Counted from the first letter of the stretch, positions 3,501 through 43,985 are shown. The stretch is 64,000 nt of DNA from Hyalangium minutum (GCF_000737315.1 NZ_JMCB01000026.1:48882-112881), one strand, 5' to 3'. The notes: generated by a model from the letters alone, not told the origin. Program-made: numbers and translations.

Positions 3501-6500
3501 GTGGCGCCACTGTCCGCGGCCACGTTGAAGACGTCATCCACCGCATCCGGGTTGTCGTTGACTGGCGTGACCGTGACCGCGACGGCGGCCGTGTCGTTGC
3601 CACCGTTGCCGTCCGAGATGGAGTAGTCGAACGTCACCGTGCCGTTGAAGTTGGCCGTCGGCGTGAAGGTCACCACGCCGCCCGTCAGCGTCACCGTGCC
3701 GCCCGTGGCCGGCTGGGTCACCGCCGTCACCGTCAGCGTCTCCCCCGCATCCGGGAACGCCGTGTCGTTGGCCAGCACGTCCAGCACGTTGTCCGTGCTG
3801 TCCTCGGCCACCGAGAACGTGTCGTTCACCGCATCCGGCGGGTTGTTGGGTGCCATGCCCACGCGCACCGCGACGGTGGCGGTGTCAGTGCCGCCATTGC
3901 CGTCCGAGAGGGTGTACGTGAACGTCGTGGTCCCCACGAAGCCCGCGGCCGGCGTGAAGCTCACCACTCCACCGGAGAGCGTCACCGTGCCGCTTGGGGC
4001 CGGCTGAGTCACCGCCGTCACCGTCAGCGTCTCGCCCACGTCCGGCGCGAACGTGTCGTTGGCCAGCACATCCAGCACCGTGGCACCACTGTCTTGCGCC
4101 ACGGAGAAGGAGTCGTTCACCGCGTCGGGCGGATCATTGACCGGGGTCACCGTGACAGTGACCGTGGCCGTGTCCGTGCCGTTGTTGCCGTCATTCACCG
4201 TGTACGTGAACGTCGTGGTGCCGTTGAAGTTGGCCGTCGGCGTGAAGAGCACCGTGCCGGTGTTGGTCAGCGTCACCGAGCCACCGGTGGCCGGCTGAGT
4301 CACCGCCGTCACCGCGAGCGTCTCCCCCACATCCGGCGTGGTCGTGTCGTTGGCCAACACGTCCAGCGGGTTGTCCGTGCTGTCCTCGGCCACCGAGAAC
4401 GTGTCGTTGCGAGCATCCGGCGGGTTGTTCGTCTCCGTGACGACGACCGTGACGGTGGCCGTGGCCGTACCGCCGTTGCCGTCCTCGATCGTGTACGAGA
4501 AGGACACCGTCCCGGCGAAGCCCGTCGTCGGCTGGAAGCGGACCAAGCCACCGCTCAGCGACACCGAGCCACCCGTGGCCGGCTGCGTCACCGCCGTCAC
4601 CGTCAGCGTCTCGCCCACGTCCGGCTCCGTGCTGTCGTTGGCCAGCACATTGAGCACCGTGGCCGGGCTGTTGCGGCTCACCGTGAAGCTGTCGTCCCGG
4701 GCCGTGGGCGGGTTGTTCGAACCGGCCACCCTCACCGTGACGGTCGCCGTGTCCGTGCCGCCGTTGCCGTCCGAGATGGTGTACGTGAACGTCGTGGTCC
4801 CGTTGAAGCCCGCGGCCGGCGTGAAGCTCACCACGCCGCCCGTCAGCGTCACCGTACCGTTGGCCGGCTGAGTCACCGCCGTCACCGTCAGCGTCTCGCC
4901 CACGTCCGGCGCAATCCGGTCGTTGGCGAGCACATCCAGCACGCGGGGCGGGCTGTTCACCACCACCTCGAAGCTGTCATCCACCGCATCCGGGTTGTCG
5001 TTGACCGGCGTGACGGTGACCGTGACCCGCGCGGAGTCCGTACCGTTGTTGCCATCCGAGAGGGTGTACGTGAACGTCGTGGTGCCGTTGAAGTTGGGCG
5101 CCGGCGTGAAGCTCACCACGCCGCCCGTCAGCGTCACCGTGCCGTGGGCCGGCTGGGACACCGCCGTCACCGTCAGCGTCTCGCCCGTGTCCGGCGCGAA
5201 CGTGTCGTTGGCCAGCACGTCGAACGTCGTGGCGCCGCTGTCCTCGTCCACCGTGAAGCTGTCCTCCACGGCATCCGGCGGGTTGTTCGTGCCGAACACC
5301 GACACGGTCACCGTGGCCGTGTCCGTGCCGCCGTTGCCATCCGAGAGGGTGTACGTGAACGTCGTGACGCCGCTGTAGCCAGGCGTCGGCGTGAAGCGCA
5401 CCACCCCGTCGATCAGCGTCACCGAGCCGTTGGCCGACTGGGTGATCTGCGTGATGGTCAGCGTCTCGGGCGCATCCGGCAGGTACGTGTCGTTGAGCAG
5501 CACGTCCAGCGGCGTGTTCGAGCTGTCCACCGCCACCATGAAGCTGTCGTTGACGGCATCCGGCGGATCGTTCGCCGGGTCTACGGTCATCGTCACCGTC
5601 GCCGAGTCCGTGCCACCGTGGCCATCGGAGATCGTATACGTGAACGTCGTGGTGCCGAAGAAGTTGGGCGCCGGAGCGAAGCGCACGAGCCCCCCGCTGA
5701 GCGTCACCGTGCCGTTGGCCGGCTGAGTCACCGCCGTCACCGTCAGCGTCTCACCCGTGTCGGGCAACGCCGTGTCGTTGCCCAGCACGTTCACCACCGT
5801 GAGCGGATAGTCCTCGGTCGTCGAGAAGCTGTCGTCGTTCGCGGTGGGCGGATCGTTGACCGGCGTCACCGTCACCGTGACGACCGCCGTGTCGCTGGCA
5901 GTGCCGCCGTCGGAGAGCGTGTACGTGAACGTCACCGTGCCGTCGAAGTTGGACAGCGGCGTGAACCGCACCACTCCGCCCGACAGCGTCACCGTGCCGC
6001 TGGACGGCTGTGTCACCGCGGTGATGACCGGCGTGTCGCACTGGTCGTTGGCCGTCACGTTCAGCGCTGTGGAGCCGCTGTCCTCGGCCACCGTGAAGGT
6101 GTCATCCACGGCGTCGCAGTCGGGCACCGCCGTCACGGTCACGGTCACGATGGCCGTGTCCGTGCCGCCGTTGCCATCCGAGATGGCGTAGCTGAACGTC
6201 ACCGTGCCGTTGTAGTTGGGCGCGGGCGTGAAGCTGACGTTGCTCGACGTGAACGTCACCGAGCCACCCGTGGCCGGCTGAGTCACCGCCGTGATGGTCA
6301 GCGTCTCGCCCGTGTCCGGAGCCGTCGTATCGTTGGCCAGCACGTCCAGCACCGTGGCGCCGCTGTCCTCGGCCACTGTGTAGTTGTCGTCGTTGGCCAC
6401 CGGCGGGCGGTTCGCCCCGGAGACCGTCACCGTCACCGTGGCCGTGTCCGTGCCGCCGTTGCCGTCGGAGATCGTGTACGTGAACGTCGTGGTGCCCGAG

Positions 6501-9500: not shown

Positions 9501-12500
9501 CCGCTGTCCTCGTCCACCGTGAAGCTGTCGTCCACCGCATCCGGCGGATCGTTCTCGTCGTTGACGATGACAGTCACCGTGGCCGTGGCCGTCCCGCCGT
9601 TGCCATCCGAGATGGTGTACGTGAACGTCGTGGTCCCCACGAAAGCGTTGTTCGGGGTGAAGGTCACGCTGGAGCCGGTAAAGGACACCGAGCCGCCCGT
9701 GGCGGGCTGAGTCACCGTGGTGATGGTGAGCGTCTCGCCCGTGTCGGGCACTGCCGTGTCGTTGGCCAGCACGTTCAGCGCCGTGGGGCCGCTGTTCTGG
9801 CCCACCGTGAAGCTGTCGTTGTTGGCCGTGGGCGGATCGTTCACCGGCGTCACCGTCACCGTCACCGTGGCCGTGTCGCTGCCACCGTTGCCGTCCGAGA
9901 GGGTGTACGTGAACGTCGTGGTGCCGTTGAAGTTGGCCGTCGGCGTGAAGCTGACGTTGGAGGCCGTGTGGGTCACCGTGCCGCCCGCGGGCTGGGTGAC
10001 GGAGGTGATGGTCAGCGTCTCGCCCACGTCCGGGGCGAACGTGTCGTTGGCCAGCACGTTGAACGTCGTGGCCGCGCTGTCCTCGGCCACCGTGTAGCTG
10101 TCGTTCACCGCGTCCGGCGGGTCATTGACCGGCGTCACCGTCACCGTGACGGTCGCCGTGGCCGTGCCGCCGTTGCCGTCCGAGATCCGATACGTGAACG
10201 AGGTGGTGCCGTTGAAGTTGGCCGCCGGCGTGAAGCTGACGTTGGAGGCCGTGAAGGTCACCGTGCCGTTGGCCGGCTGAGTCACCGAGGTGATGGTCAG
10301 CGTCTCGCCCGTGTCCGGCGCGATCGAGTCGTTGGCCAGCACGTTGAAGGCCGTGGCCGTGCTGTCCTCGGCCACCGTGAAGGTGTCGTCGGTGGCCGTC
10401 GGCGGGTCATTGACCGGCGTCACCGTCACCGTCACCGTGGCCGTGTCGTAGCTCCCGTTGCCATCCGTGATGGTGTACGTGAACGTCGTGGTACCGTTGA
10501 AGTTCGCGGCCGGCGTGAAACGAACGCCGGTGGCCGAGAAGGTCGTCGAGCCGTTGGCCGGCTGGGTCACCGCCGTCACCGTGAGCGTCTCGCCCACGTC
10601 CGGAGCAAACGTGTCGTTGGCGAGCACGTCGAACGTCGTGGCGCCGCTGTCCTCGAGCACGGTGTAGCTGTCGTTCACCGCGTCCGGCGGCTCGTTGACC
10701 GGCGTCACCGTCACCGTGACGGTCGCCGTGGCCGTGCCGCCATTGCCATCCGAAATGGTGTACGTGAACGTCGTGGTGCCGAAGTAATCGGGCGCTGGCG
10801 TGAAGGTGACGTTGCCGGCCGTGAAGGTCACCGTGCCGTTGGCCGGCTGAGTCACCGCCGTGATGGTCAGCGTCTCACCCAGGTCCCCGTTGGTCGTGTC
10901 GTTGGCGAGCACGTCGAACGTCGTGGCGCCGCTGTCCTCGGCCACCGTGAAGCTGTCGTTGGTGGCAAGCGGCGGGTCATTGACCGGCGTCACCGTCACC
11001 GTGACGGTCGCCGTCGCCGTGCCGCCGCTGCTGTCCCTCACCGTATAGGTGAACGTCGTGGTGCCGTTGAAGTTGGGCGCGGGCATGAAGCGCACCACCC
11101 CACCGATGAGCGTCACCGTGCCATTGGCCGGCTGGGTCACCGCCGTGACCGACAGGGTCTCGCCCGTGTCCGGCGCAATCGAGTCGTTGGCCAGTACATC
11201 CACCATCGTGGCGCCGCTGTCCTCGGCCACCGTCAGCGTGTCGTTGTTGGCCGTGGGCGGATCGTTCACCGGATCCACCGTCACCGTGACGGTCGCCGTG
11301 TCCGTGCCACCGTTGCCGTCGGACGCCGTGTACGTGAACGTCGTGATGCCAAAGAAGTTGGCCGCCGGGGTGAAGAAGACGGTGTTGGCGTTGAAGGTCA
11401 CCGTGCCGTTGGCCGGCTGGGTCACCGCCGTGATGGTCAGCGTCTCGCCGACGTCCGGCGCCGTGCTGTCGTTGACGAGCACGCTGAACGCATTGGCGGA
11501 GCTGTCCTCGAGCACCGCGTAGCTGTCGTCGTTGGCCGTGGGCGGATCGTTGACGGGCGTCACCGTCACCGTCACCACCGCCGTGTCGCTGCCGCCGTTG
11601 CCGTCGGACACCGTGTACGTGAACGTCATGGTGCCGTTGAAGCCCGTGGCCGGCGTGAAGCTCACCACCCCACCCGTCAGCGTCACCGTGCCGTTGGCCG
11701 GCTGGGTGACGGAGGTCACGGTGAGCGTCTCTCCGATGTCCGGCGCCGTGGTGTCGTTGGCCAGCACGTCGAACGTCGTGGGCCCGCTGCTCTCGGCCAC
11801 GGTGAAGCTGTCGTTCACCGCGTCCGGCGGATCGTTGACCGACGTGACGTTGACCGTCACGGTGGCCGTGTCGAAGAGGCCGTTGCCGTCCGTCACCGTG
11901 TACGTGAACGTCACCGTGCCGTTGAAGTTGGCCGTAGGCGTGAACCGGACATTCGAGGCGTTGAACGTCACCGAGCCGCCCGTGGCCGGCTGGGTCACTG
12001 CCGTCACCGACAGAGTCTCTCCGATGTCCGGCGCCGTGGTGTCGTTGGCCAGCACATCGAGCGTCGTGACCGGGCTGTCCTCGGGCACGGAGAAGACATC
12101 ATCCACCGCATCCGGCGGCGCGTTGCCCGGCGTCACCGTGACCGTCACCGCGGCCGTGTCCTGGCCACCATTGCCGTCCGAGATGGTGTACGTGAACGAG
12201 GTGGTGCCCACGAAGTTGGCCGCGGGCGTGAAGCTGACGTTGGCGGCGGTGAACATCACCGTGCCGTTGGCCGGCTGGGTCACCGTCGTGATGGTGAGCG
12301 ACTCGCCAAGGTCCGGCGCGAACGTATCGTTGGCCAGCACGTCAAACACCGTGGGCGGGCTGTTGCGAGCCACCGAGTAGCTGTCGTTGACGGCATCCGG
12401 CGGATCGTTCACCGGCGTCACCGTCACCGTCACGGTGGCCGTCGCCGTGCCACCGTTGCCATCCGAGATGGTGTACGTGAACGTCGTGGTGCCGAAGAAG

Positions 12501-32172: not shown

Positions 32173-32183
32173 AGAAGGCAGCC

Positions 32184-34160: not shown

Positions 34161-34877
34161 ATGCAGATCTCCGAGCAAGATTCCAGCGTCCGCCTGAAGG
34201 TGACCTACAAGACGCCCGAGGCGCTGATCGACGAGTACACGCGGAGCGTCGGCCAGGGGAGTGTCACGCTGGAGACGCGGCGCAGCCTGACGCGGGGCAC
34301 GCGCTTCGTGTTCGAGATGCAGGCGGAGGGGCTGGCGCAGCCGGTGGAGGTGGTGGGCGAGGTGGTGAACATCACCCCGCGGCCCGGAGGGCGCTACCAC
34401 CTGACGGTGAAGTACGCGACAGACGTGGACCGGGTGGCGCTGGACGCGGTGCTGCAGCGCATCTTCGCGCAGGAGCACGAGAAGATGCGCAAGTACCCGC
34501 GCATCCCGCTGAACGTGCGCGCCATCGAGTCCACGCCGTTCTCGCCGGTGTTCTACGTGCGAGACATCTCTCGCGGAGGCGTGGGCATGGAGGTCGACGC
34601 GCCCGCGCTGCCGGCGATGGTGAAGGTGGGCACGCCGTTCCTGCTGGAGATGGAGTTGTCGCAGGGGCCGCTGCTGCTGCCGGGCGAGGTGATGTGGGCG
34701 TCCACGGCGTTCCGGGCGCACTCGCCAGTGACGCCCATCTTCGGCGTGGGCTTCAAGGATCTGCCGAAGGACACGGCCGAGCGGCTGGAGTCGCTGCTGT
34801 CGCTGGACTCGCTGCCCCCGGGCCCGTGGTGGGCGCGCGTGAGCTTCGGCAACGAAGCCCTGTCGCGCATGCCGTGA
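34161..34877 (+). CDS. Tandem PilZ-domain protein
   Basis: The N-terminal PilZ-like domain lacks the canonical motifs. The second domain has RKYPR (RxxxR) and DISRGG (DxSxxG). Confidence 0.85.
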   Translation: MQISEQDSSVRLKVTYKTPEALIDEYTRSVGQGSVTLETRRSLTRGTRFVFEMQAEGLAQPVEVVGEVVNITPRPGGRYHLTVKYATDVDRVALDAVLQRIFAQEHEKMRKYPRIPLNVRAIESTPFSPVFYVRDISRGGVGMEVDAPALPAMVKVGTPFLLEMELSQGPLLLPGEVMWASTAFRAHSPVTPIFGVGFKDLPKDTAERLESLLSLDSLPPGPWWARVSFGNEALSRMP

Positions 34878-34916
34878 GGCTGGATCCAGCCCAAGTGGGC
34901 CTCTCACGCGCTGCGC

Positions 34917-35645
34917 CTATTTCACGACGACGCCTTTTAACCCCGTTCGCGCCTCGAACTCGCGGACCAGCCGCTCCATTTCCGCTGGATCCTCGCAGCC
35001 CAGACTGAATGAGAAGGTCGGTTTTGTCGGATGCCGGTAGAGCAGCAGACCGGCGTCACCGCGCTCGTAAAGCGCGCAGTGTTCAGCGGGAGGAATGCGC
35101 TTGAAGCCCTTCTCCTCGGCCAGCGCGGACACGATGTCCGAGCGGTAGCGGCCATCGGCACCGGGATCCTCCGGTGACGAGAAATTCCGTCGATAGGGCA
35201 GCAACGGTAGGCGAAGCGCCTTGAAGGCCTCGTAGTAGAGGAATTCCTCCAGACCTACATGCTTGGGATGACTGCCCTCCGGGGGGTAGTTCTTCGACAG
35301 CAGCCGGCGTACGAGCATGCAGTCTTCAGCGCCATGAGGGCTTGAGCGATCGAGGAAGTAATCCCAGCCATCGGGCCCCTGATCTTGTGCCACACGGATA
35401 TAACGCCCGTGCTGTAGCCAATCCATGGCGATGTAGGCCCCGATTTTCCCGCTGATGGAGAAGTTAGCCTCAGCAAGTTCGAGGTCACCCATGCTCTCAC
35501 CCATCGTCCGTAGGAAACGACGGTAGGTGCCCGGCAGCGGACCCGCGAGTTCCTCCAGAACCGCAATCTCTGGCTCGCCTGCCGGCACGATCTCCTTGAT
35601 AAAACCGGGGCGGTACTGTTCGATGAACTCAACGAGTGCTCTCAT
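34917..35645 (-). CDS. SMI1/KNR4 (SUKH) family immunity-like protein
   Basis: EIAVLEELAGPLPGTYRRFLRTMG matches the SUKH helix/LPxxY..FL..xG pattern. Start set at ATG 35645. Confidence 0.7.
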   Translation of the reverse strand: MRALVEFIEQYRPGFIKEIVPAGEPEIAVLEELAGPLPGTYRRFLRTMGESMGDLELAEANFSISGKIGAYIAMDWLQHGRYIRVAQDQGPDGWDYFLDRSSPHGAEDCMLVRRLLSKNYPPEGSHPKHVGLEEFLYYEAFKALRLPLLPYRRNFSSPEDPGADGRYRSDIVSALAEEKGFKRIPPAEHCALYERGDAGLLLYRHPTKPTFSFSLGCEDPAEMERLVREFEARTGLKGVVVK

Positions 35646-35665
35646 GGCCGATCCTATTGATTCAA

Positions 35666-36130
35666 TCAACTGCAGTTCGTTCTGCAGTACATGCCGGGAA
35701 GATTTTCCTGGCACTTTGAACATGAAGGCACGTTCTCGCCGCTCTTGAATTCTTGTGTCCTCTCCTCTGGTTCAGACAACTGCTTCGTGACTGGATCCTC
35801 TATCCGAACCAGGAAAGTTATCTTGGGGCCTCTACTGGGCTTGAAACCCTCCACCATCGGATAGAACAGCCGCTCGATGAGTTGCTTGGGCTTGTGTCCG
35901 CCATGCCTCTGCATGATCTGCTTGGCAGCACACATCCACTCCTCCTGCGCAACCCCCGAATCAACATGCGGACTTGCGCACTCGAACCCTGCCGACAATA
36001 CGGCCTTCTCGAAGCCCTTCGGTGCGAGACCCGAGCAGGTCGCGAGCTTCTTGCCTTTGCAAACACAGACCATGACTCCGGTCATGTAACCCTTGGTGAA
36101 GGTGTCGGTACCGTCGTCAAATCTAAGCAC
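35666..36130 (-). CDS. Cys-rich hypothetical protein, possibly a truncated polymorphic-toxin C-terminal domain
   Basis: 154-aa ORF with CAAK and PSCSKC motifs, immediately upstream of the SUKH gene. Its GTG start abuts the tRNA-like repeat. Confidence 0.45.
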   Translation of the reverse strand: MLRFDDGTDTFTKGYMTGVMVCVCKGKKLATCSGLAPKGFEKAVLSAGFECASPHVDSGVAQEEWMCAAKQIMQRHGGHKPKQLIERLFYPMVEGFKPSRGPKITFLVRIEDPVTKQLSEPEERTQEFKSGENVPSCSKCQENLPGMYCRTNCS

Positions 36131-36131
36131 T

Positions 36132-36161
36132 GCTCAGTTGGATAGAGCGGCGGTTTCCTAA
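36132..36161 (+). repeat. tRNA-Arg(CCT) 5' fragment; left att-like direct repeat
   Basis: GCTC-AGTTGGATA-GAGC (D-arm), G, GCGGT, TTCCTAA (CCT anticodon loop). Similarity stops at the end of the loop; no T-arm or acceptor stem. Confidence 0.85.
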
Positions 36162-36198
36162 CCCTTGAAGGGCCGCTCGGTCCTCGGGTGAGAACAGC

Positions 36199-36276
36199 TA
36201 AGTCCTTGAGAGTACTGAACGCTGGAGTTCACCTGCGTTCACCCAGAACCGCTCGATTACGTACCAATTACGTACC
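36199..36276 (+). promoter_or_regulatory. att-arm-like sites: IHF-like motif and 10-bp direct repeat
   Basis: TAAGTCCTTGAGA at 36199-36211 has one mismatch to the IHF consensus YAANNNNTTGATW. ATTACGTACC occurs at 36256-36265 and 36267-36276. Confidence 0.5.
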
Positions 36277-36429
36277 GGACGGCCCATAAGTCTGTGTCCG
36301 GTCAGGTTCGTTGCCGCTGCTCGGCAGTGACGTGGACCATCGCGCAGGGATGGTTCCCGCCCGGCTTCCGAGAGAATCAGGTTCGGCCCTACGCGAGACG
36401 CCAGAACTTCCGGCCGCCGCGTGGGGAGC

Positions 36430-38583
36430 TTAGATCAACAAGGTCGGAGCTCCCCAGCTAGCGATGTTGCCAACGTCAATTCCCTCGTGAAGGCGCTCGG
36501 CGACCGGTGCAGCATTGGGTAGTAGAGCAAGTCGTTGCAACATCGATTCTCGCCCAGCCAGCACGACCTGCATGCTCTCCCCGTACGCGTCCAGGTGGTC
36601 CTTGAGACGGACGTGCGCGTCGGCAAGGAGGACACCGAATGCGCCTGCGAACTGAAATCCAACCGGCCACAGGTGACTGATTACAGTCTGTGATCGGCCG
36701 ACGAGCACCGGTCCAAGGCCCACGCCAAGCGGCCCTCCGAACGTCGCCGAATGGCCGCCGCTACAGACGTTGAGAACGAGCAAGCGCCGGTCGCCACTTG
36801 GCGCTGGGAGTGCTGCCAAGTCGTCGAGGGACAATTCCTCACTCTCACCGAGTACTAGTGCGGAGCGCTCCAACTGAAATGAGCGGTATTCGCCATGGGC
36901 GGCGACCCAGAGCGCATCGTACCGAGTGTCCGAGTAAGCGGACTTGAAGGCGTCTGCTGTGGGAGAAATTCGGTCGACAGCGACACCTGCCCGCTCAAGT
37001 ATCGAGGTGACCGCGTCGAGTTCGAACGCGGACGACATAGTGTTGTCACCCAGAAGGGCGACGTGCCTGAGTGGACGCACAGGGAGTGGCTCGCGCAGCG
37101 ACACGCTCAGCGCGGCATTGTGTCCTCTATGCCGGAGGAGCAGCGGCTGGACTGGGACGGTCAGCCCAGGCGCCAGCACAAGCCGATCCGGCAGTGGCGT
37201 GCCGAACTCGGAAAGGGCGTCGAGACGCAGCAACCTTATTGACTCGGCTTCGAAACGGCGACCGTACTCCGGATGGGGATGCATCCCCCCCCCTCTTTGT
37301 CTCGGGCGAAGCGAGGGCTGGTCTCCGAAAAGGATCGTGACATCGAGGAACGCATTCAGGGCCGCCAGAAAATCTCCGAAATTCTCCTTCGGCGTTGTGT
37401 CCATTGGCGCAACTGTTTCGCCGGACACCCAAAGAGTGCCCACCGGATGTCCTGGCACCGCTAGCAGTGGCACTTGCACGAGTGGCTGGGCCGAAACATC
37501 TCCGGACCACGCGGCGAGAATCTCCACAACTGACGCGGCGTCGCCGCTCTCGGCGTATGCGCGAAGGACAGGCTGCAGCATCCGAAACGACTGACCCGCG
37601 CGCAGCAGTGCCTCGGTCGGTGACGCCGCTTGCTGCGCGCGTTCAGTGCGAATTGAGGCGAGGTCTTCGAGCAACTGGGAGTGAATTTCGCGAAGCCTTG
37701 CAGAGTCACCCCAGCACGAGGCAATCCGCAGGAGCAGTCGGTTTGCTGCACTATATCTGTCGAAATAGGTTGCGAGCGCACGGCGCGCGCGTTCCGCCTG
37801 CGGCTCGCTAGCAAACGGATACGTGTTCGTCGCCAGGAAAAGTTCGATCCCTGCGCGATCTCCTTCCGAGAGAATACCGGAATCGAGAAGCTCCAGCAGT
37901 GGTGCCGCCGCTGCTTGCGCATCCTGTGATTGGTAGCGAGCCGCCCACTGAGCCCGCTGCATCAACATGTCCAGCACCAAGCTGGGGAATGATGCCCGGG
38001 AGAAGATCCCCGCAGAAATCATTTTGCCGGGCACAGGAAAGATTTCCTGAGCGTGACTGAGCAAGTCCCCGGAACGTGCGCTGTGGGCGAACAGCGTTCC
38101 GAGCCAGTCGAGAACGGCATCCGTGACAAGCGCTCCGACGAGCGCCTGTGGAGCCGAAAGCGCGCCAGCGAGAGGGCTGTAATCGAACGTGTACTCGCCG
38201 TCGCCGCAATACTCCTCCACAGCAACCGCTCGGATGAGCCATTCGTGCGTGCGCGCAAGGTCACCGGTATCTAAGGCGGCTCGTGCGACGAGCCTCGCGA
38301 TGGCCAGTTTGACCCAGTCGAAGAGGAGACGCGACTCGTCACCGAACAACGCTCGTGCTGCTTGGAGTTCGCGAAGCAAGCCAACGGAAACCGCTTCGAG
38401 CGCGGTCAGGCCTGCACGAGTCCACTCGTTTTGCTGCTTCAGCTCTGCCGCGAGGAGGAGTTCTTGGAGAAACTGGAGAGGGTGAAAGGGAAGGCTCCGG
38501 GCAAATTCAGGCAGCACGTCTTCGGCGACGTCTGCCAACCTTGGAAACACCTCCACGAACCGACGTTGCGCGGGTTGGCTCAT
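36430..38583 (-). CDS. CHAT-domain (caspase-like) protease with helical N-terminal region
   Basis: C-terminal ALWVAAHG (His, 36895-36897) and LVLNVCSG (Cys, 36763-36765) dyad; ISHLWPV and W-G-A-P-T-L-L tail typical of CHAT. Confidence 0.85.
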   Translation of the reverse strand: MSQPAQRRFVEVFPRLADVAEDVLPEFARSLPFHPLQFLQELLLAAELKQQNEWTRAGLTALEAVSVGLLRELQAARALFGDESRLLFDWVKLAIARLVARAALDTGDLARTHEWLIRAVAVEEYCGDGEYTFDYSPLAGALSAPQALVGALVTDAVLDWLGTLFAHSARSGDLLSHAQEIFPVPGKMISAGIFSRASFPSLVLDMLMQRAQWAARYQSQDAQAAAAPLLELLDSGILSEGDRAGIELFLATNTYPFASEPQAERARRALATYFDRYSAANRLLLRIASCWGDSARLREIHSQLLEDLASIRTERAQQAASPTEALLRAGQSFRMLQPVLRAYAESGDAASVVEILAAWSGDVSAQPLVQVPLLAVPGHPVGTLWVSGETVAPMDTTPKENFGDFLAALNAFLDVTILFGDQPSLRPRQRGGGMHPHPEYGRRFEAESIRLLRLDALSEFGTPLPDRLVLAPGLTVPVQPLLLRHRGHNAALSVSLREPLPVRPLRHVALLGDNTMSSAFELDAVTSILERAGVAVDRISPTADAFKSAYSDTRYDALWVAAHGEYRSFQLERSALVLGESEELSLDDLAALPAPSGDRRLLVLNVCSGGHSATFGGPLGVGLGPVLVGRSQTVISHLWPVGFQFAGAFGVLLADAHVRLKDHLDAYGESMQVVLAGRESMLQRLALLPNAAPVAERLHEGIDVGNIASWGAPTLLI

Positions 38584-38641
38584 TTGCCTCGTTCTTCTTG
38601 GATGAGAAGGCTAGAATGCTGAGTAACAGGCAACAGACCAG

Positions 38642-39856
38642 CTACTTGTCCTCGCCACCACCATCTGTGGACGCTTTCTCAAGCGCGGCTTCAGCCTCTG
38701 CACGCCTCAGGCGCGAAGCTTCGCGGATGGAAGGTTCCAGCTCTCGCACGACGGCAACTGTAATTGCGTTTGCAAGCTCCCAGTGCTCATCAGGAGTCAG
38801 CTCTCTCCTCGCCGTCAACTCGGCAGCTTTCTCCCAATAGGGAAGAATGATCCTTCGCAACCAGTGCTGCCTCTGAATACCAAAGACCTCAGGCAAAAGG
38901 CTGTTCAATTGCGCGAGAGCCGTTTCCCGGAACTCCTCGTAACTCAGTCGAGCACACGACTCAAAGCTTGGAATCACCATTTTGAGATCGGCTGAAGCGT
39001 TCTGTCGATCACTTCTGCCAAGCTGGTCGACCCGGTAACTGTAGCTGAAATTCTTGTCCAGCGTGCAGGTGGCCAAGTTGACGACGAATGAGAGCAGTCC
39101 GAAGTAGGTGACGAGACCGGTGACCTGCCCAGTAGCGGCAGTGCCATGCACAATGACGAGATGATCTAGACGGCCCATTGGAGCGCTCTCTGGTCGCCGA
39201 ATGTCTACAGGCGCGACTTGCACGGGCAACACTTCTGGCTGTGTACCATGCATTACAAACTGACGGATCGAGTTGAACTCGGGGCGAAGAAAGAGCGCTT
39301 GTTCGTGCATGCCTAGCTGATTGCAGGCAATCTTCGCGGTGGCCCTGTATGGATCTCGGTCCCAGATCTCCACGGGAAAGGTCAGTTTTGGCATCAACCC
39401 GATGTGCTTGGTGGCAAGCGACTCGACCTGCTTCATCACCTCATCTAGAGACAGGCCGAGTTGCTTTACCTTCTTTCTGAGAGCCTGACGTATCTCCGGC
39501 ATGCCTGGTGCCGAGCCATTAATGTGCAGCTCTCTTCCAATGACCTGTACGTCCAGTTTGGGCGTGGGGCGCACGACTCCACCGGCTCTGACCTCATAGG
39601 TTTCGCCATCGACGGACGTTGCCTGCATCGCAGGGGCAGGCTCGTTCGGTTTCCTATCTGAGCGGGCATCGAGTGGGACCGTAATGGGTCGAAGTGCCTG
39701 TGCCAGTGCGGCATCAATACTGCCGCCAAAGTAGTCGTTAGTGAATTTGTCGATGAGTTCGCACGAGATGAGCTGGCCTCCCAGGAAGTTTGGGATGATG
39801 TGCTCCTTGCTCGGTACTTGGATGGCTTTTTCTGTGTAGATATCGATACTCATCAT
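38642..39856 (-). CDS. HNH endonuclease-like protein (HNH_5 type) with long C-terminal region
   Basis: N-terminal SKEHIIPNFLGG...NDYFG motif. Start set at MMSIDIY (39856). Confidence 0.75.
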   Translation of the reverse strand: MMSIDIYTEKAIQVPSKEHIIPNFLGGQLISCELIDKFTNDYFGGSIDAALAQALRPITVPLDARSDRKPNEPAPAMQATSVDGETYEVRAGGVVRPTPKLDVQVIGRELHINGSAPGMPEIRQALRKKVKQLGLSLDEVMKQVESLATKHIGLMPKLTFPVEIWDRDPYRATAKIACNQLGMHEQALFLRPEFNSIRQFVMHGTQPEVLPVQVAPVDIRRPESAPMGRLDHLVIVHGTAATGQVTGLVTYFGLLSFVVNLATCTLDKNFSYSYRVDQLGRSDRQNASADLKMVIPSFESCARLSYEEFRETALAQLNSLLPEVFGIQRQHWLRRIILPYWEKAAELTARRELTPDEHWELANAITVAVVRELEPSIREASRLRRAEAEAALEKASTDGGGEDK

Positions 39857-39950
39857 AAAAGCCCATTTTCGATGAAAAGAGGGTGGTGGCCAGTGGTCTC
39901 CACCAATAGCGCACATTGTAGCTTGTGCCCACGGTGAGTGACCCGACGAA

Positions 39951-40520
39951 CTACACCTCCTTGAACTTCGTCCCCGTGGCTCCGATGTGCTCTAGGGCCT
40001 CCTTGACCTCCTCGGAGACGATGAGGGCGATGGTCCACCCCCAAGGGCGGAAGATCTTGGCATCCCCCACCTTCGAGGGATCAATTCGCATACCGGCCAC
40101 GGCTCGGTACTTGCCGGTCTTCTCCGGACGCCCATCCTCTGGAGTCCAATACTCCACCTCCTCGGACGCTTCATCGTCGATGCACCTCACCAGACGAGTG
40201 ACATTCACGAGGCAGAAGTGATCTGGCTGTCCGTCGATCTCGACAGGGAAGAGCTGGACATCCTCAGGGGCTAGCTCCTTCAGGAGCGAAGCGACCTTGG
40301 CGTGGACAACAGGAATGGCCCCAGCATCCGCGAGCGAAAAGTCGAGCGTCTTGCCAAGGCGATAGAGGGGAACTCGCAGCCGTCCCTGGACTTGAGCGGG
40401 ATCCCCCCTCATGAACAGCCACGCCCCATGATCCTGTCCTACCGCATTGATGGGCATGCCCAGATGCCATCGGCCGGCAATGTGAACGTCATCGGAGAGG
40501 TCGAAGTACCGCTTCGCCAT
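39951..40520 (-). CDS. Imm11/DUF1629-type immunity protein
   Basis: RYFDLSDD...RWHL...LDFS...IPVVH...VQLFPV...CIDDEASE...IFRPWGW..ALIVSEEVK resembles myxobacterial immunity proteins paired with AHH-type toxins (recognised from memory). Confidence 0.75.
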   Translation of the reverse strand: MAKRYFDLSDDVHIAGRWHLGMPINAVGQDHGAWLFMRGDPAQVQGRLRVPLYRLGKTLDFSLADAGAIPVVHAKVASLLKELAPEDVQLFPVEIDGQPDHFCLVNVTRLVRCIDDEASEEVEYWTPEDGRPEKTGKYRAVAGMRIDPSKVGDAKIFRPWGWTIALIVSEEVKEALEHIGATGTKFKEV

Positions 40521-40535
40521 CGTCGGTTCCTTGAG

Positions 40536-40893
40536 TCATGGGCTCCGCGTCACCAGCTTGTTGAGCCATGTACCCGGGGTGGAGATCTGTCGTCCCGGCC
40601 GTTGGAGTTCGCCCGTCAGTGCCGGTACCAGCCACTGCGCGGGGAGAGTTCAAGCAGTTCCCGCGCTACTTTCTCCGGGTTAACTGAGAGCCTCTTCTGC
40701 CAGACCTCCTTTGCGATGGCCGGTGGGTGAACTCCTCCTCCTCCAACTCCACGGGACGGGCATCGTTCGCGCGTGGGACATGGATGAAGGGCTCACCATG
40801 GCCCGTGTCGAGGTGCACCACGCGCGTGCTGCTGCAAACAGTGGACAGTGTCCAGACAAACCAAAACTGCCCACCGACAAACTGTGGCTGAAG
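40536..40893 (-). pseudogene. Collapsed lipoprotein-toxin gene (N-terminal and C-terminal remnants only)
   Basis: Frame A reads ...WFVWTLSTVC SSTRVVHLDTGHGEPFIHVPRANDARPVELEEEEF. After a frameshift: AIAKEV...NPEKVARELLELSPRSGWYR. This joins near 40622 to ALTGELQRPGRQISTPGTWLNKLVTRSP-stop, directly upstream of the immunity gene. Confidence 0.65.
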
Positions 40894-41013
40894 CCTGTCC
40901 AGGAATTCACAGCCTCGGCCCTGGCCGGCGCGCCCATCTTCCTATACTTCAGCCCTCACTCTCAGCATGGCCTCTATCCTGTCTATGCTCATGCTCAAGC
41001 GGGAGAACTTCCA

Positions 41014-41979
41014 TCAGCTACTGACGGAGATAGCGTTGATCTGGCCTGGGTATGTGAAGTTCCCGATCAGATCCAGCAAGTCGCCAGCAGACACCACAAT
41101 ATAATCCAGAACGATTAATGTCTCCGCCTCCGTCAACGCCTTATCGGAGATGATGTTAAGCGGCGTCGAGTGGAGGAGTTTGCTCGTATAAGGGTAGAGG
41201 AACCGATAGTGCTTTTCCATGCCAGCGTCCTTCGCGCGATCGGCCCAATTCCATTTATTGATCGCTATGCCGAACATTCGCGCATCGAGCAGGGATGGCA
41301 GCACAGTATCGAACTCCGCCTTGTGCTGAATTACCTTACTCAACTGCCCCTGGTACTTAGGGATGGTCTTCGTTCTCAGCAGATGGGCTTGGTAGCCGTA
41401 CCCGTTCGAAGTGGCCGGTTCCGAAAACAAGCTGAACTCGCGCCGAACCATGTCGTCCAGCATGTCGGTTTTTGACCTATGCTCGGCTTGCGCCTCTGCA
41501 ATCGCTTCCGGCGATGGATCGCTGGCAACTATTTCGCCAACTGTCGACATCAGAGCGTGGTCATCAAGTTCTTCGACAGACTCAAACAGATCTGCCTCAT
41601 CCGAGATCTTCGTGATCAGGCCCTGGAGGCTGTCGATTTGCCCTCGAAGGAGTTGGCTGTAGAAAACCAAGCCATATCGGTGGTCATTCGACATGAGCCG
41701 AAGCCAGGCTAAGTTCTCAAAAATGTTGCGAGCTATGGCTAGCAGCTCAAGGGTTTCATATGGCCCGTCCCGTCGAAGGAGGCCCTCTAATTTGTCGAGA
41801 GTGCCAAGGTGAGCGAGGTGAATCCACCAAATGGCGGAGTGGTTGCGTTCCCGCTCAGAGGAAAGCCTGAATTCGAGGAGCGTCCGCTGCCCAGCAGCGC
41901 GGGCTCGGATGAGCGGAGCACGGTTACGGACGGTATTTCTAAATTCGTCTATCAGCGACTGAGCTGTCCTAGCGCCCAT
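41014..41979 (-). CDS. DUF5677/HEPN-like helical protein
   Basis: ARNIFE (RxxxE) and WxxRA...GM..HY..LY..TSKLLH motifs. ATG 41979 has a purine-rich RBS. Confidence 0.55.
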   Translation of the reverse strand: MGARTAQSLIDEFRNTVRNRAPLIRARAAGQRTLLEFRLSSERERNHSAIWWIHLAHLGTLDKLEGLLRRDGPYETLELLAIARNIFENLAWLRLMSNDHRYGLVFYSQLLRGQIDSLQGLITKISDEADLFESVEELDDHALMSTVGEIVASDPSPEAIAEAQAEHRSKTDMLDDMVRREFSLFSEPATSNGYGYQAHLLRTKTIPKYQGQLSKVIQHKAEFDTVLPSLLDARMFGIAINKWNWADRAKDAGMEKHYRFLYPYTSKLLHSTPLNIISDKALTEAETLIVLDYIVVSAGDLLDLIGNFTYPGQINAISVSS

Positions 41980-42161
41980 CCTGCCCCCTTTTTGGTATAG
42001 GCCAGTGAAAAAGCCTAGCTTGGGTAGGTACAATATCCGGTTTGGCTCGCACACGCATGATTGTCAGATCAGAGGCGATGTGGTGCCAGAGGCCTTCTGC
42101 ATCCACCGGGCCCGACGCCGCACCGCTCTGGCCTTCCGCCACTGAAGCGACCGCATTGGGA

Positions 42162-42190
42162 GGATAGAGCGGCAGTTTCCTAAACCGCAG
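42162..42190 (+). repeat. tRNA-Arg(CCT)-like fragment; right att-like direct repeat overlapping the ACAD stop
   Basis: GGATAGAGC G GCAGT TTCCTAA ACCGC AG. CTA at 42180-42182 is the ACAD TAG, and ACCGCAG is ACAD coding sequence that completes the anticodon stem. Confidence 0.85.
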
Positions 42191-43985
42191 ACAGCGGATA
42201 GCCGCCAGCCTTCTCCACCGCCGCCACGATCTGCTCGCGCAACTCCGTGGGGTTATACGGAGTGAAGAGCTGAAGTGGCGCAATCCGGGCCAGGTGCTGC
42301 TGGAGCGCCTCGCCCTTCGCCGAAGCGCACAGCGCGCGCCGCGTCCGCTCGAACGAGCGGGCCATGGCCTCCATCCCGTACAGCCGCGCCATCGCCACCC
42401 GGGTCGCATCCAGCGCCCCATCGGAGGCGCTCTGCCGCGTGCGCGTCACCATCGAGTCCAGCGCGAACGCGTCCATCACCACGTCCGACAGCCCCGCCAG
42501 CACCTCCTGGTGCTGATCCAGCTCCGTGCCGAACGTCTCCGCCGCCACCTTGAGCCCGTAGAGCGCCATGCGCTTGAGGCACTCCGCCGCGCGCTCCTCC
42601 GCCGCCAGCGCGTCCTCCCGGCGCGCCCGCGGCACCCCACCCTGCTCCAGCTCGTCCTCCACCGACTGCGCCACCGCCATCAGCGGAAGCTGCCCCTTCA
42701 CCGCCCGCTTCAGCAGCAGCCCGGTGATGAGCATCCGGTTGATCTCGTTCGTGCCCTCGAAGATGCGGTTGATGCGCGCATCCCGGTACGCCCGCTCCAC
42801 CGGATACTCCTCGATGTAGCCCGCCCCGCCGTGGATCTGCACCGCGTCGTCCACCAGCTGCCCGATCGCCTCCGAGCCGAACACCTTCATGATCGACGAC
42901 TCGATCGCGTACTCCTCGATGGCCGCTATCACGTGCGCGTCGTAGTCCTTCGCCTGCCGCTCGTGCCCCGCCAGCTTCCCGTCCACCAGCCCCGCCGTCC
43001 GGTACGTCATGGACTCGTTCGCGTAGATCACCGTGGCCATGCGCGCGAACTTCTCGCGCGTCAGCGGGAAGCTCACCACCGGCGTGCCGAACTGCTTGCG
43101 CTCCTGGGCAAAGCCCAGCGCGTTCTCGAGCTGGATCTTCATCCCGCCCGTCACACCCGCCCCCAGCTTGAGCCGGCCGTAGTTGAGGATGTTGAACGCG
43201 ATCTTGTGCCCGCGGCCGATCTCCCCCAGCACGTTCTCCACCGGCACCCGCGCGTCCTCGAAGTACAGCGGGCATGTGGACGAGCCACGGATGCCCATCT
43301 TGTGCTCCTCGGGCCCCACCGTGAATCCCGGCGTGTCCTTCTCCACGATGAAGCCCGTGAACTTGTCCCCGTCCACCTTCGCGAACACCACGAACACATC
43401 CGCGAACGCCGCGTTCGTGATGTAGAGCTTCGAGCCGTTCAGCACGTAGTGCTTCCCGTCGGGCGACAGCACTGCCTTCGTCTTCGCCCCGAGCGCATCG
43501 CTCCCGCTGCCCTGCTCCGTCAGCGCGTACGCCGCCACCCACTCGCCCGTGGCCAGCTTCGGCAGGTACTTCGCCTTCTGCTCCTCGTTGCCGAACCAGA
43601 CGATCGGCAGCGTGCCAATGCCCGTGTGCGCGCTGAACGTCACCGACCAGGAGCCCATGACGCTCATGGCCTCGGTGATCAACATGGACGTCGTCTTGTC
43701 CAACCCCAGCCCGCCGTAGGCCTCGGGGATGTCGATCATCAGCAGGCCCAGCTCGCCCGCGCGCCGCAGCAGCTCTTTCAGCAGCGCGTTGTCCTTGGAC
43801 TCGATGCGCTCGGCCTGCGGCAGCACCTGCTCACGGCTGAACTGCATCGCTGTCTTCAGGTACAGGCGATGGTCTTCCGTGAACTGCTCCGGCGTCATGA
43901 TGCGCTGCGAGCCCACCTCCTCGAGGAGGAACGCGCCACCTGCGGGCAGCTCGGTGGACTGCGACGTCTCGGTACTTGCGGCCAT
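42180..43985 (-). CDS. Acyl-CoA dehydrogenase (long form)
   Basis: YALTEQGSGSDA, LNGSKLYITN, KMGIRGS, RKQFG, QIHGGAGY and RINRIFEGTNEI motifs. Confidence 0.97.
   Translation of the reverse strand: MAASTETSQSTELPAGGAFLLEEVGSQRIMTPEQFTEDHRLYLKTAMQFSREQVLPQAERIESKDNALLKELLRRAGELGLLMIDIPEAYGGLGLDKTTSMLITEAMSVMGSWSVTFSAHTGIGTLPIVWFGNEEQKAKYLPKLATGEWVAAYALTEQGSGSDALGAKTKAVLSPDGKHYVLNGSKLYITNAAFADVFVVFAKVDGDKFTGFIVEKDTPGFTVGPEEHKMGIRGSSTCPLYFEDARVPVENVLGEIGRGHKIAFNILNYGRLKLGAGVTGGMKIQLENALGFAQERKQFGTPVVSFPLTREKFARMATVIYANESMTYRTAGLVDGKLAGHERQAKDYDAHVIAAIEEYAIESSIMKVFGSEAIGQLVDDAVQIHGGAGYIEEYPVERAYRDARINRIFEGTNEINRMLITGLLLKRAVKGQLPLMAVAQSVEDELEQGGVPRARREDALAAEERAAECLKRMALYGLKVAAETFGTELDQHQEVLAGLSDVVMDAFALDSMVTRTRQSASDGALDATRVAMARLYGMEAMARSFERTRRALCASAKGEALQQHLARIAPLQLFTPYNPTELREQIVAAVEKAGGYPLSAV

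Follow-up and report, generated by a model that had tools for sequence, protein, structure and literature searches.

Decayed tandem islands with tRNA-Arg(CCT) half-copies beside an acyl-CoA dehydrogenase stop codon in Hyalangium minutum

Introduction

How do two partial copies of a transfer RNA (tRNA) gene come to bracket a set of protein-coding genes in a myxobacterial chromosome, with one of the copies running into the stop codon of an acyl-CoA dehydrogenase (ACAD) gene? This question is raised by a stretch of Hyalangium minutum DNA of 64,000 nucleotides (nt) (GCF_000737315.1, NZ_JMCB01000026.1:48882-112881; the whole stretch is called the window below), in which two adjoining islands, here named A and B, separate a PilZ-domain gene from the ACAD gene. 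An earlier note on this DNA had proposed that an integrase targeting tRNA-Arg used the tRNA-like end of the ACAD gene as a secondary bacterial attachment site (attB) without disrupting the gene, and that the incoming tRNA half then improved the mimic and created a hotspot for repeated capture of cargo. Here, we describe the anatomy of the locus, its homology to elements located at real tRNA genes, and the empty sites and variable cargo found at the same junction in relatives. We conclude, with a probability of about 0.65, that the locus holds a tandem pair of decayed islands, belonging to a family that targets the anticodon loop of tRNA-Arg(CCT), which used and then reused a pseudo-attachment site at the ACAD stop codon.

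Results

Two tRNA-Arg(CCT) half-copies bound island B

A pattern search of the whole window with the 22-mer GGATAGAGCGGCGGTTTCCTAA returned a perfect copy at 36140-36161 and a copy with one mismatch at 42162-42183, just as the earlier note had described, and no further copy in the rest of the window when up to three mismatches were allowed. None of 100 dinucleotide shuffles contained a match (0/100), and an independent repeat search also recovered the family. ARAGORN detected no complete tRNA in the 64 kb, in agreement with the note. The 22-mer corresponds to the D-loop and D-stem, the 5′ strand of the anticodon stem and the anticodon loop of tRNA-Arg(CCT). It matched at least 120 loci from many phyla in species-representative genomes (loci are cited below by L numbers), and ARAGORN called tRNA-Arg(cct) at the match in 9/9 tested loci with an uncut match, the match in L050 being cut by a contig end.

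Comparison with related tRNAs, taken from Archangium lansingense (L028), L004 and L037, showed that both copies are longer than had been claimed. Against the A. lansingense reference, which begins GGTCCCGTAGCTCAGTTGGATAGAGCGGCGGTTTCCTAAACCGCAGG, the left fragment is identical at 30/30 and the right fragment at 28/29 positions (Table 1), which upholds the assignment of the repeats to the D-arm and anticodon arm of this tRNA. The left fragment covers the D-arm, the 5′ strand of the anticodon stem and the 7-nt loop TTCCTAA, with identity ending exactly at the last base of the loop as previously reported, and the same boundary recurs at real tRNA-Arg(CCT) genes of many genomes. In local alignment to the tRNA, the right segment scored 27 against a shuffle maximum of 15, a better match than chance provides, and the left segment scored 32 (a score without shuffle comparison). 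The last 11 nt of the right fragment (42180-42190) are the ACAD codons (T)CT GCG GTT TAG on the opposite strand, so that the ACAD stop codon TAG lies in the ‘anticodon loop’ of this copy. Its single mismatch, G30A, lies at window position 42173. GGCAG is the normal tRNA-Arg(CCT) sequence in other taxa, where it pairs with ACTGC or ACTGT (L013, L079, L080 and L104); the mismatch could reflect a different donor instead of decay.

As judged from these alignments, the repeats are genuine attachment-site (att) remnants of tRNA-Arg(CCT) 5′ halves, belonging to two decayed islands that lack an integrase, with the left fragment being both the putative right attachment site (attR) of island A and the putative left attachment site (attL) of island B, and the right fragment the putative attR of island B. 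The GC content of the segment 34878-42161 is 0.58, compared to 0.69 in the 10-kb flanks on both sides, and this drop confirms the 7.3-kb segment between the PilZ and ACAD genes as a foreign island. The ACAD gene itself is undisrupted, as had been stated: its closest orthologues are almost all 600–602 amino acids (aa) long and ...GGYPLSAV is a recurrent C-terminus among them, and therefore the 601-aa reading frame, which ends in ...YPLSAV, has been neither shortened nor extended.

The same element family occupies genuine tRNA-Arg(CCT) genes

Scanning metagenome contigs with the left junction of island B, GTTTCCTAACCCTTGAAGGGCC, we found four loci (L160, L161, L162 and L163), each carrying a full tRNA-Arg(CCT) 5′ half, acceptor stem included, with a promoter-like CCTGCTaTAA box upstream. 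In all four, TTCCTAA closes the 5′ half, and sequence homologous to window positions 36162-36279, the conserved left arm of island B, comes next; identity to the window is 81–90% over ~148 nt of tRNA fragment and arm, and the sequences and genes beyond are unrelated. Conservation in a multiple alignment reaches ~36296, corresponding to an arm of ~135 nt. The arm contains a palindrome, CCCTTGAAGGG, at 36162-36172, two copies of GTTCACC (at 36227 and 36237, a spacing of 10 bp), two copies of TTACGTAC (at 36257 and 36268, a spacing of 11 bp) and the stretch GRTTACGTACMRATTACGTAC. These tandem motif pairs sit at helical spacing, and we read the arm as a probable protein-binding recombination arm. 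A group I intron or other RNA was considered for the arm and rejected, with no Rfam match at E<=1 in 34800-42400 and no covariation in the arm alignment; in the case of a group I intron in the anticodon loop of tRNA-Arg(CCU), the arm is followed by kilobases of protein-coding cargo instead of a 3′ exon.

In L163, located on a 548-kb contig, the order is displaced 5′ half, arm, SIR2_2, ParA-like ATPase, Imm11-SUFU and a lipoprotein toxin with a C-terminal AHH nuclease. This island closes with another promoter-like region followed by an intact tRNA-Arg(CCT), beyond which lies the gene for the CCA-adding enzyme, a gene that also adjoins tRNA-Arg(CCT) in at least eight other Myxococcota loci. Island B shares homology with L163 at each end, on the left in its 5′ half and arm, and on the right in Imm11, the AHH-toxin remnants and the 5′ half. 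In L161, a homologous lipoprotein toxin gene and the promoter region stand upstream of the full 5′ half that leads into the arm, and genes for Vsr, a C5 methylase and an Eco29kI-type endonuclease lie downstream of the arm; L161 is therefore a tandem array located at a real tRNA gene and organised in the same way as the window. By homology, island B belongs to a family of elements that occupy real tRNA-Arg(CCT) genes: primary-site use is seen in the full 5′ halves and arms of L160–L163 and in the intact tRNA beside cca in L163. The match of both island B ends to L163, together with the array in L161, supports the repeated capture of cargo suggested earlier.

The tRNA-Arg(CCT) gene lies directly upstream of the CCA-adding enzyme gene in L004 (2284-3598), L037, L163 (3254-4622) and many other Myxococcota loci, often with tRNA-Val(CAC) ~0.9 kb away; in A. 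lansingense (L028) the context differs, with the tRNA gene beside a P450 gene.

Replacement of the 5′ half at tRNA-Arg(CCT) seems to be widespread. In L051 (Polyangia), a 40-nt perfect direct repeat (tRNA positions 1–38 plus one upstream base), ending in TTCCTAA, brackets a 3.6-kb island whose last gene is a tyrosine integrase that ends 22 nt before the restored tRNA-Arg(CCT). Inspected by eye at the expected catalytic tyrosine motif, this integrase (2756-3694, + strand) reads ...LGHASVTTTERCAHL, and a Tyr-to-Cys change may have rendered the enzyme inactive. Displaced 5′ halves with the TTCCTAA boundary are present at ~10 among the 120 genome loci listed, plus several viral contigs. They include the genome loci L003, L019, L020, L043, L089, L100, L103, L109 and L121 and the viral contigs L131, L136, L137, L143, L147 and L148, some of which end 4–8 nt past TTCCTAA, and are distributed over Planctomycetota, Acidobacteriota, Verrucomicrobiota and Myxococcota. 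The open reading frames (ORFs) beside nine other displaced 5′ halves are not integrases. Identity ends at the 7-nt loop in the left copy of the window, in L051, in L160–L163 and in several other loci, as is characteristic of a crossover in the anticodon loop (class A; for the integration classes of islands in tRNA genes (tDNA), see Williams 2002, as cited in PMC4383910).

Relatives carry empty sites or different cargo at the ACAD stop codon

We compared the ACAD-PilZ junction across nine ACAD orthologue-group neighbourhoods. Relatives do not carry the region of the window syntenically; as had been anticipated, empty sites and variable cargo were found instead. In H. rubrum (L127), 9 bp separate the ACAD and PilZ stop codons, and in L154/155 the distance is 15 bp. 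L156 has a 98-bp spacer (9807-9904) with a long GC-rich palindrome, CCCCCTCTCCCTCCGGGAGAGGGAGGGGG, that none of the other junctions has. The remaining junctions hold an acetyltransferase gene (L125/126 and L157–159), three genes (99 aa, DUF2165 and peptidase M74; L123/124), a PIN-domain gene (L153) or TPR-PAAR-VgrG-Rhs genes (L122, a near-conspecific relative with ACAD identities of 98% for the protein and 95.6% for the DNA). The last of these, at L122 7463-14244, is a cargo island of the type VI secretion system (T6SS) type, comprising TPR, PAAR, VgrG and an Rhs/YD-shell toxin; its right arm is low in GC, and it has a decayed tRNA-Arg half of its own.

In window orientation, the junction reads ...TAGCTCTGTTGTATAGAAAGGCGGTTTCCTA followed by AACCGTGG in L122, ...GTTGGAGTACCTGAGCGGCGGTTTGCTA followed by GACCGCAG in L123 and ...GGCTAGAAAAGCGCTTCCTA followed by AACCAAGG in L153, compared to ...GGATAGAGCGGCAGTTTCCTA followed by AACCGCAG in the window itself. 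Local-alignment scores to the tRNA, each given against its shuffle maximum, were 28 vs 12 for L122, 22 vs 14 for L123 and 27 vs 15 for the window, with L153 borderline at 12 vs 12; the empty and acetyltransferase junctions scored inside the shuffle range. Four Hyalangium lineages hence have different cargo set against a tRNA-like remnant at the same ACAD stop, clearly significant in three and borderline in one. The sequences upstream of the remnants are mutually unrelated although the ACAD genes are 92–96% identical at the nucleotide level, and unrelated flanks at one nucleotide position are what separate arrivals would be expected to produce.

The acetyltransferase gene ends, directly before the ACAD stop, in GTCC(T/C)GTAGCTC, which resembles tRNA positions 2–13 (L125 ~11807-11825 and L157 ~9807-9825). 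This 12-mer would fit an internally deleted tRNA half; it scores within the shuffle range, is probably due to chance and was rejected as a remnant.

The native end of the ACAD gene is a partial tRNA mimic

The empty sites read TCACACCGCGGA (L154), CTAGGCCGCCGA (L127) and TTAGACCACGGA (L156), compared to CTAAACCGCAGG in the tRNA, which they match at 7–8/12 positions. Taken together, empty-site relatives match the loop and 3′ stem at 7–9/12 positions, and the 3′ strand of the anticodon stem, ACCGC, at 4–5/5; the match to ACCGC is complete (5/5) in L154, where the native junction reads CACCGCGG. ACCGC derives from the first two positions of the Ala-Val codons and, as it appears from these comparisons, is the only native part of the mimic. 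GTT makes up 1/40 Val codons in ACAD and 9/344 in neighbouring core genes, and TCT 1/30 Ser codons in ACAD and 11/236 in neighbouring core genes. All four remnant-bearing lineages have the stop codon TAG, with GTT or GTC, and the outgroups have TGA, TAA or TAG with GTG, GTC, GGT or GCC as the last codon. The positions that make the present match near-perfect are synonymous and unusual. Since both lie inside the 7-nt loop, the expected strand-exchange segment, the TAG stop and the T of GTT would most simply have been imported by crossover and derive from an element.

The view that the gene end mimics a tRNA anticodon arm consequently survives in part: ACCGC is native and the ACAD end completes the 28/29 match, but the native resemblance is limited and TAG and GTT look imported. 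The right copy is not a pristine incoming tRNA half, being 5′-truncated and fused by deletion to a truncated toxin gene.

Gene content and decay of the islands

The features of the locus are listed in Table 1. The BovA profile matches the product of the largest island B gene over its full length (residues 13–716 of 717), making it a candidate anti-phage protein homologous to BovA of Borvo. The HNH_5 match of the 404-aa protein (E=0.0017, 18.7 bits vs a cutoff of 27.5) was found on a longer, 424-aa ORF at 38642-39916. Imm11 and the L163 Imm11 domain are 67% identical in aa sequence, and the Imm11 region of the window has nt identities of 91.5% and 89.6% to the AHH-Imm11 loci of H. gracile and C. 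fuscus, respectively. These two genomes carry intact AHH (451 aa)-Imm11 pairs (H. gracile L165 7938-9878, C. fuscus L164 8630-10570) at ordinary chromosomal sites unrelated to the island, with neither a tRNA fragment nor the arm, and the pairs confirm that the toxin gene of the window is fragmentary, with an internal deletion and a frameshift in the larger remnant. In pairwise alignments with L165, L164 and L163, toxin homology runs up to ~42161 and then gives way to tRNA sequence at the microhomology TTGG...AGAGCG. The right copy is therefore a tRNA half truncated by one deletion, which removed its first ~17 nt, the promoter and the toxin N-terminus together. The att regions of island B thus differ in integrity, the left arm being conserved and the right half truncated, and arm scans of viral contigs found no helper element.

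At the other end, the left fragment starts at tRNA position 10, i.e. it is 5′-truncated, and is abutted by a truncated ORF of island A. The island A ORFs have no match in Pfam, NCBIfam, PADLOC or PDB, and a single-sequence AlphaFold model (pLDDT score of 39.8) was unusable; that they are the relic of a toxin C-terminus and its immunity protein is only a guess.

Table 1. Features of the PilZ-ACAD region, in window coordinates
Feature	Position	Strand	Basis and remarks
PilZ-domain gene	34161-34877	+	PF07238; conserved left flank, convergent with ACAD, syntenic in all relatives
Island A, ~1.25 kb, GC 0.58	34878-36131		Decayed; absent from empty-site relatives
Island A ORF, 242 aa	34917-35645	-	No family match
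Island A Cys-rich ORF, N-terminal region missing	35666-36130	-	Abuts left tRNA fragment
Left tRNA-Arg(CCT) 5′-half fragment	36132-36161	+	GCTCAGTTGGATAGAGCGGCGGTTTCCTAA; 30/30 vs L028 tRNA positions 10-38
Conserved left arm of island B, putative P′ arm	36162-36279	+	BLAST alignment of window and L163 ends at 36279
BovA-like CHAT protein (candidate Borvo anti-phage defence)	36430-38583	-	PADLOC PDLC03832, E=5e-186; Pfam CHAT, 1e-09
404-aa protein	38642-39856	-	Gene call; weak HNH_5 match below Pfam cutoff
Imm11 immunity gene, now orphan	39951-40520	-	PF07791, 1.2e-09
Lipoprotein AHH-nuclease toxin remnants, cognate to Imm11	40548-40836	-	tblastn/blastn: aa 509-533 and 104-175 of L163 toxin
ORF with short DUF5677 match	41014-42054	-	PF18928, 1.6e-06; called as 226 aa, 41014-41694
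Second toxin-gene remnant	42068-42157	-	tblastn: L163 toxin aa 409-438
Right tRNA-Arg(CCT) fragment	42162-42190	+	28/29 vs tRNA positions 18-46; one mismatch, G30A
ACAD gene, 601 aa, intact	42180-43985	-	Pfam; orthologue length and C-termini; conserved right flank

Discussion

We propose that the native element would consist of the ~135-nt arm, variable defence cargo, Imm11, a gene for a lipoprotein AHH toxin, and tRNA positions 1–38 with the tRNA promoter. Such an element would recombine within TTCCTAA, replacing the 5′ half of its target tRNA and pushing the old 5′ half upstream, with a tyrosine integrase encoded elsewhere as the presumed catalyst. In the H. minutum lineage, it would have recombined with a pseudo-attB made up of the ACAD stop and the Ala-Val codons (ACCGC on the opposite strand). 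If the attachment site of the element (attP, comprising promoter, 5′ half and arm) exchanged loop segments with the end of ACAD, the right-hand junction would come out as seen, with the ACAD protein kept and the stop codon and wobble base rewritten to loop sequence (TAG, GTT). A junction in which a real tRNA 5′ arm and loop stand beside ACCGC would be a far better target for the next element, and later elements would have entered the same place, island B in the window and other cargo in sister lineages.

If L161 is a guide, new elements would enter beside the 3′ partner and push older ones upstream, and we infer for this reason that island A was inserted before island B; the structure alone is compatible with other orders, in which B came first and A entered its attL, or both arrived as a single composite insertion. 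Islands at this poor site would have lost toxins, promoters and the first 9–17 nt of their tRNA halves by deletion and would have kept immunity and defence genes (the orphan Imm11 and BovA), and stranding there would account for the decay. Excision of island B would give a 6,022-bp circle with the junction ...GGATAGAGCGGCAGTTTCCTAA joined to CCCTTGAAGGGCC..., and the repaired site would read GCTCAGTTGGATAGAGCGGCGGTTTCCTAAACCGCAGAC. The conservation of the arm beside unrelated cargo suggests that it is still in use, perhaps in trans, and any mobility at the present day would likewise be in trans.

The secondary-attB hotspot put forward in the earlier note is thus favoured by the tRNA halves, the intact ACAD gene, the empty sites, the varied cargo and the homology to L163 and L161, and is qualified by a native mimic weaker than had been supposed and by a right half that is not pristine. 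Further observations weigh against the reading we prefer, beginning with the choice of site. By our own estimate, sites with a 7–9/12 match would number in the thousands across such a genome, and therefore the native mimic permits the first event and cannot by itself explain why this site was chosen. The rare TCT codon, which matches tRNA A44, lies outside the loop, and a loop crossover does not account for it. The PilZ-side junction of island A has no recognisable loop, arm or att sequence. The acetyltransferase gene lies at the junction in other relatives with no significant tRNA remnant, and it appears from these variants that the junction also changes by other routes.

The enzyme is likewise missing from the places where it was sought. 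Neither the genes called between window positions 32180 and 53986 nor the island ORFs include an integrase or any other recombinase, as the earlier note had also remarked of the island, and the L051 integrase, used as a tblastn query, had no match in the window, matching only L051 itself and, weakly, L082. The complete L163 island, which occupies a real tRNA gene, has no recombinase, nor was one found in those parts of the L122, L123 and L153 islands that are visible, and viral-contig scans for the arm of island B revealed no integrase-bearing element that carries it. The tRNA-Arg(CCT) gene of H. minutum itself is not among the 120 loci listed for GGATAGAGCGGCGGTTTCCTAA, and a search for its usual neighbour, the CCA-adding enzyme, gave no Hyalangium entry among the 120 metagenome proteins listed.

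Some of these points would be equally at home in an account without any hotspot, in which a pre-assembled piece of a tRNA array (5′ fragment, arm, island B and 5′ half, possibly with A) landed once at the ACAD end. Such a piece could have arrived by composite excision or have been imported by homologous or microhomology-mediated recombination, and the differences between lineages would then reflect homologous exchange through the ACAD and PilZ flanks along with internal decay. Composite excision of tandem elements is a known accretion route, the final structure is identical whichever order is assumed, and microhomology deletions clearly operate at the window junction. The bare PilZ-side junction and the lack of an integrase in both the window gene calls and the L163 island count for this account as well, and in L122 ACAD identity drops to 0.87 in the last 150-nt bin vs 0.956 overall, which fits the ends of recombination tracts. 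However, the remnants and their flanks diverge far more than ACAD does (4/22 differences and unrelated flanks, with ACAD at 95.6%), and every remnant meets the stop codon at the same nucleotide, for which a site-specific enzyme is a simpler cause than repeated illegitimate events; we regard a single capture as unlikely.

Much less probable still is that a genuine tRNA-Arg(CCT) gene once stood between PilZ and ACAD, was destroyed by insertions and left the fragments as relics. The two direct tRNA copies do have the orientation expected of tDNA islands, but empty-site relatives have only 9–15 bp between the stop codons and no tRNA, the ACAD stop occupies the ‘anticodon loop’ and the conserved 601-aa frame fills the space of the 3′ half, and the real Myxococcota gene adjoins the CCA-adding enzyme gene. 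Chance or convergence, for instance on a hairpin at the ACAD 3′ end acting as a terminator or regulatory element, has next to no probability in our view. Read from its sequence, the end of the ACAD mRNA can fold into a stem of 7 bp that encloses the stop codon; yet not one shuffle in 100 contained even a single match, the identity extends to the D-arm, for which a hairpin of this kind has no use, no gene ends at the left copy, and the arm of island B follows true tRNA halves elsewhere. A terminator was also considered in its own right and rejected, with no terminator-like site predicted at the ACAD end.

The tandem, reused pseudo-attachment site that we favour has parallels in several known systems. 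Among 3919 islands in Islander, 159 have a 5′ fragment and 2083 an anticodon-centred attP, and tandem arrays occur (PMC4383910). As in these tDNA islands, direct repeats of a tRNA segment bound the island and identity ends at the anticodon loop; tandem arrays with partial tRNAs, absence from relatives, foreign composition and a family located at the real tRNA-Arg(CCT) (L160–L163) are further likenesses. Islands with a 5′ fragment are themselves a minority subclass (159/3919). Measured against Islander, the window has the displaced tDNA fragment in direct orientation, but differs in having no intact tRNA at either end, the 3′ partner being the end of a protein gene, and no integrase inside.

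ICEBs1 integrates at secondary sites outside trnS-leu2, with excision impaired (PMC3715440), and SGI1 combines secondary-site integration with tandem integration (PMC2297512). The window resembles both in that an element with a preferred primary site lies at a partly similar sequence, in tandem, and poor excision from secondary sites of the ICEBs1 type would explain stranding and decay. In contrast to these elements, the site in the window was apparently reused in several lineages after being ‘improved’ by the first insertion; their behaviour was demonstrated experimentally with a known integrase, whereas the case described here is known from sequence.

In Prochlorococcus islands, successive integrations are separated by partial tRNAs and decayed remnants (10.1101/2020.12.28.424599). 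The window shares with these tycheposons, and with cis-mobilisable elements, the att-type repeats that flank cargo devoid of a recombinase, the older elements pushed inward, and the adaptive or defensive nature of the cargo; it differs from tycheposons in that the hallmark recombinase and the replication and packaging genes are absent from the island. The cargo in turn resembles the myxobacterial SitA/SitI toxin-immunity cassettes (PMC5562445) in that the toxins of L163, L160 and L161 have a lipobox signal and are followed by an immunity gene, that the L163 toxin has a C-terminal nuclease domain, and that the genes are associated with mobile DNA, the window keeping an orphan Imm11. It differs in that the toxin gene of the window is fragmentary, and the apparent likeness to SitA is one of architecture, with no family assignment.

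Integrase-less cis-mobilisable elements arise by accretion. We would go further only tentatively, and with the odds against us, in suggesting that myxobacteria harbour a family of integrase-less cassettes, each made of the arm and a promoter-bearing 5′ half, that are moved in trans by an unlinked recombinase and that ‘tRNA-ised’ the ACAD stop into a hotspot. If this were true, such cassettes would shuttle toxin-immunity pairs and anti-phage systems (Borvo, SIR2/ParA and restriction-modification) and build tRNA arrays, and a new heritable integration hotspot would have arisen with no damage to a gene.

The locus is a variant of known phenomena, namely tDNA islands, secondary sites and tandem accretion. 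It implies that a site-specific element can establish a new hotspot at a distance from the tRNA gene it normally targets, with codons supplying one half of the core and the first insertion the other half; at a single nucleotide position, closely related strains would thus come to carry defence genes in one case and T6SS-toxin or PIN cargo in another. A stop codon and a wobble base rewritten synonymously through the crossover would be a testable molecular footprint of such an event. In myxobacteria, a family with a conserved arm and no integrase carries kin-discrimination toxins and phage-defence genes, and, if mobilised in trans, it would offer a cassette-like route for the exchange of social and immune genes.

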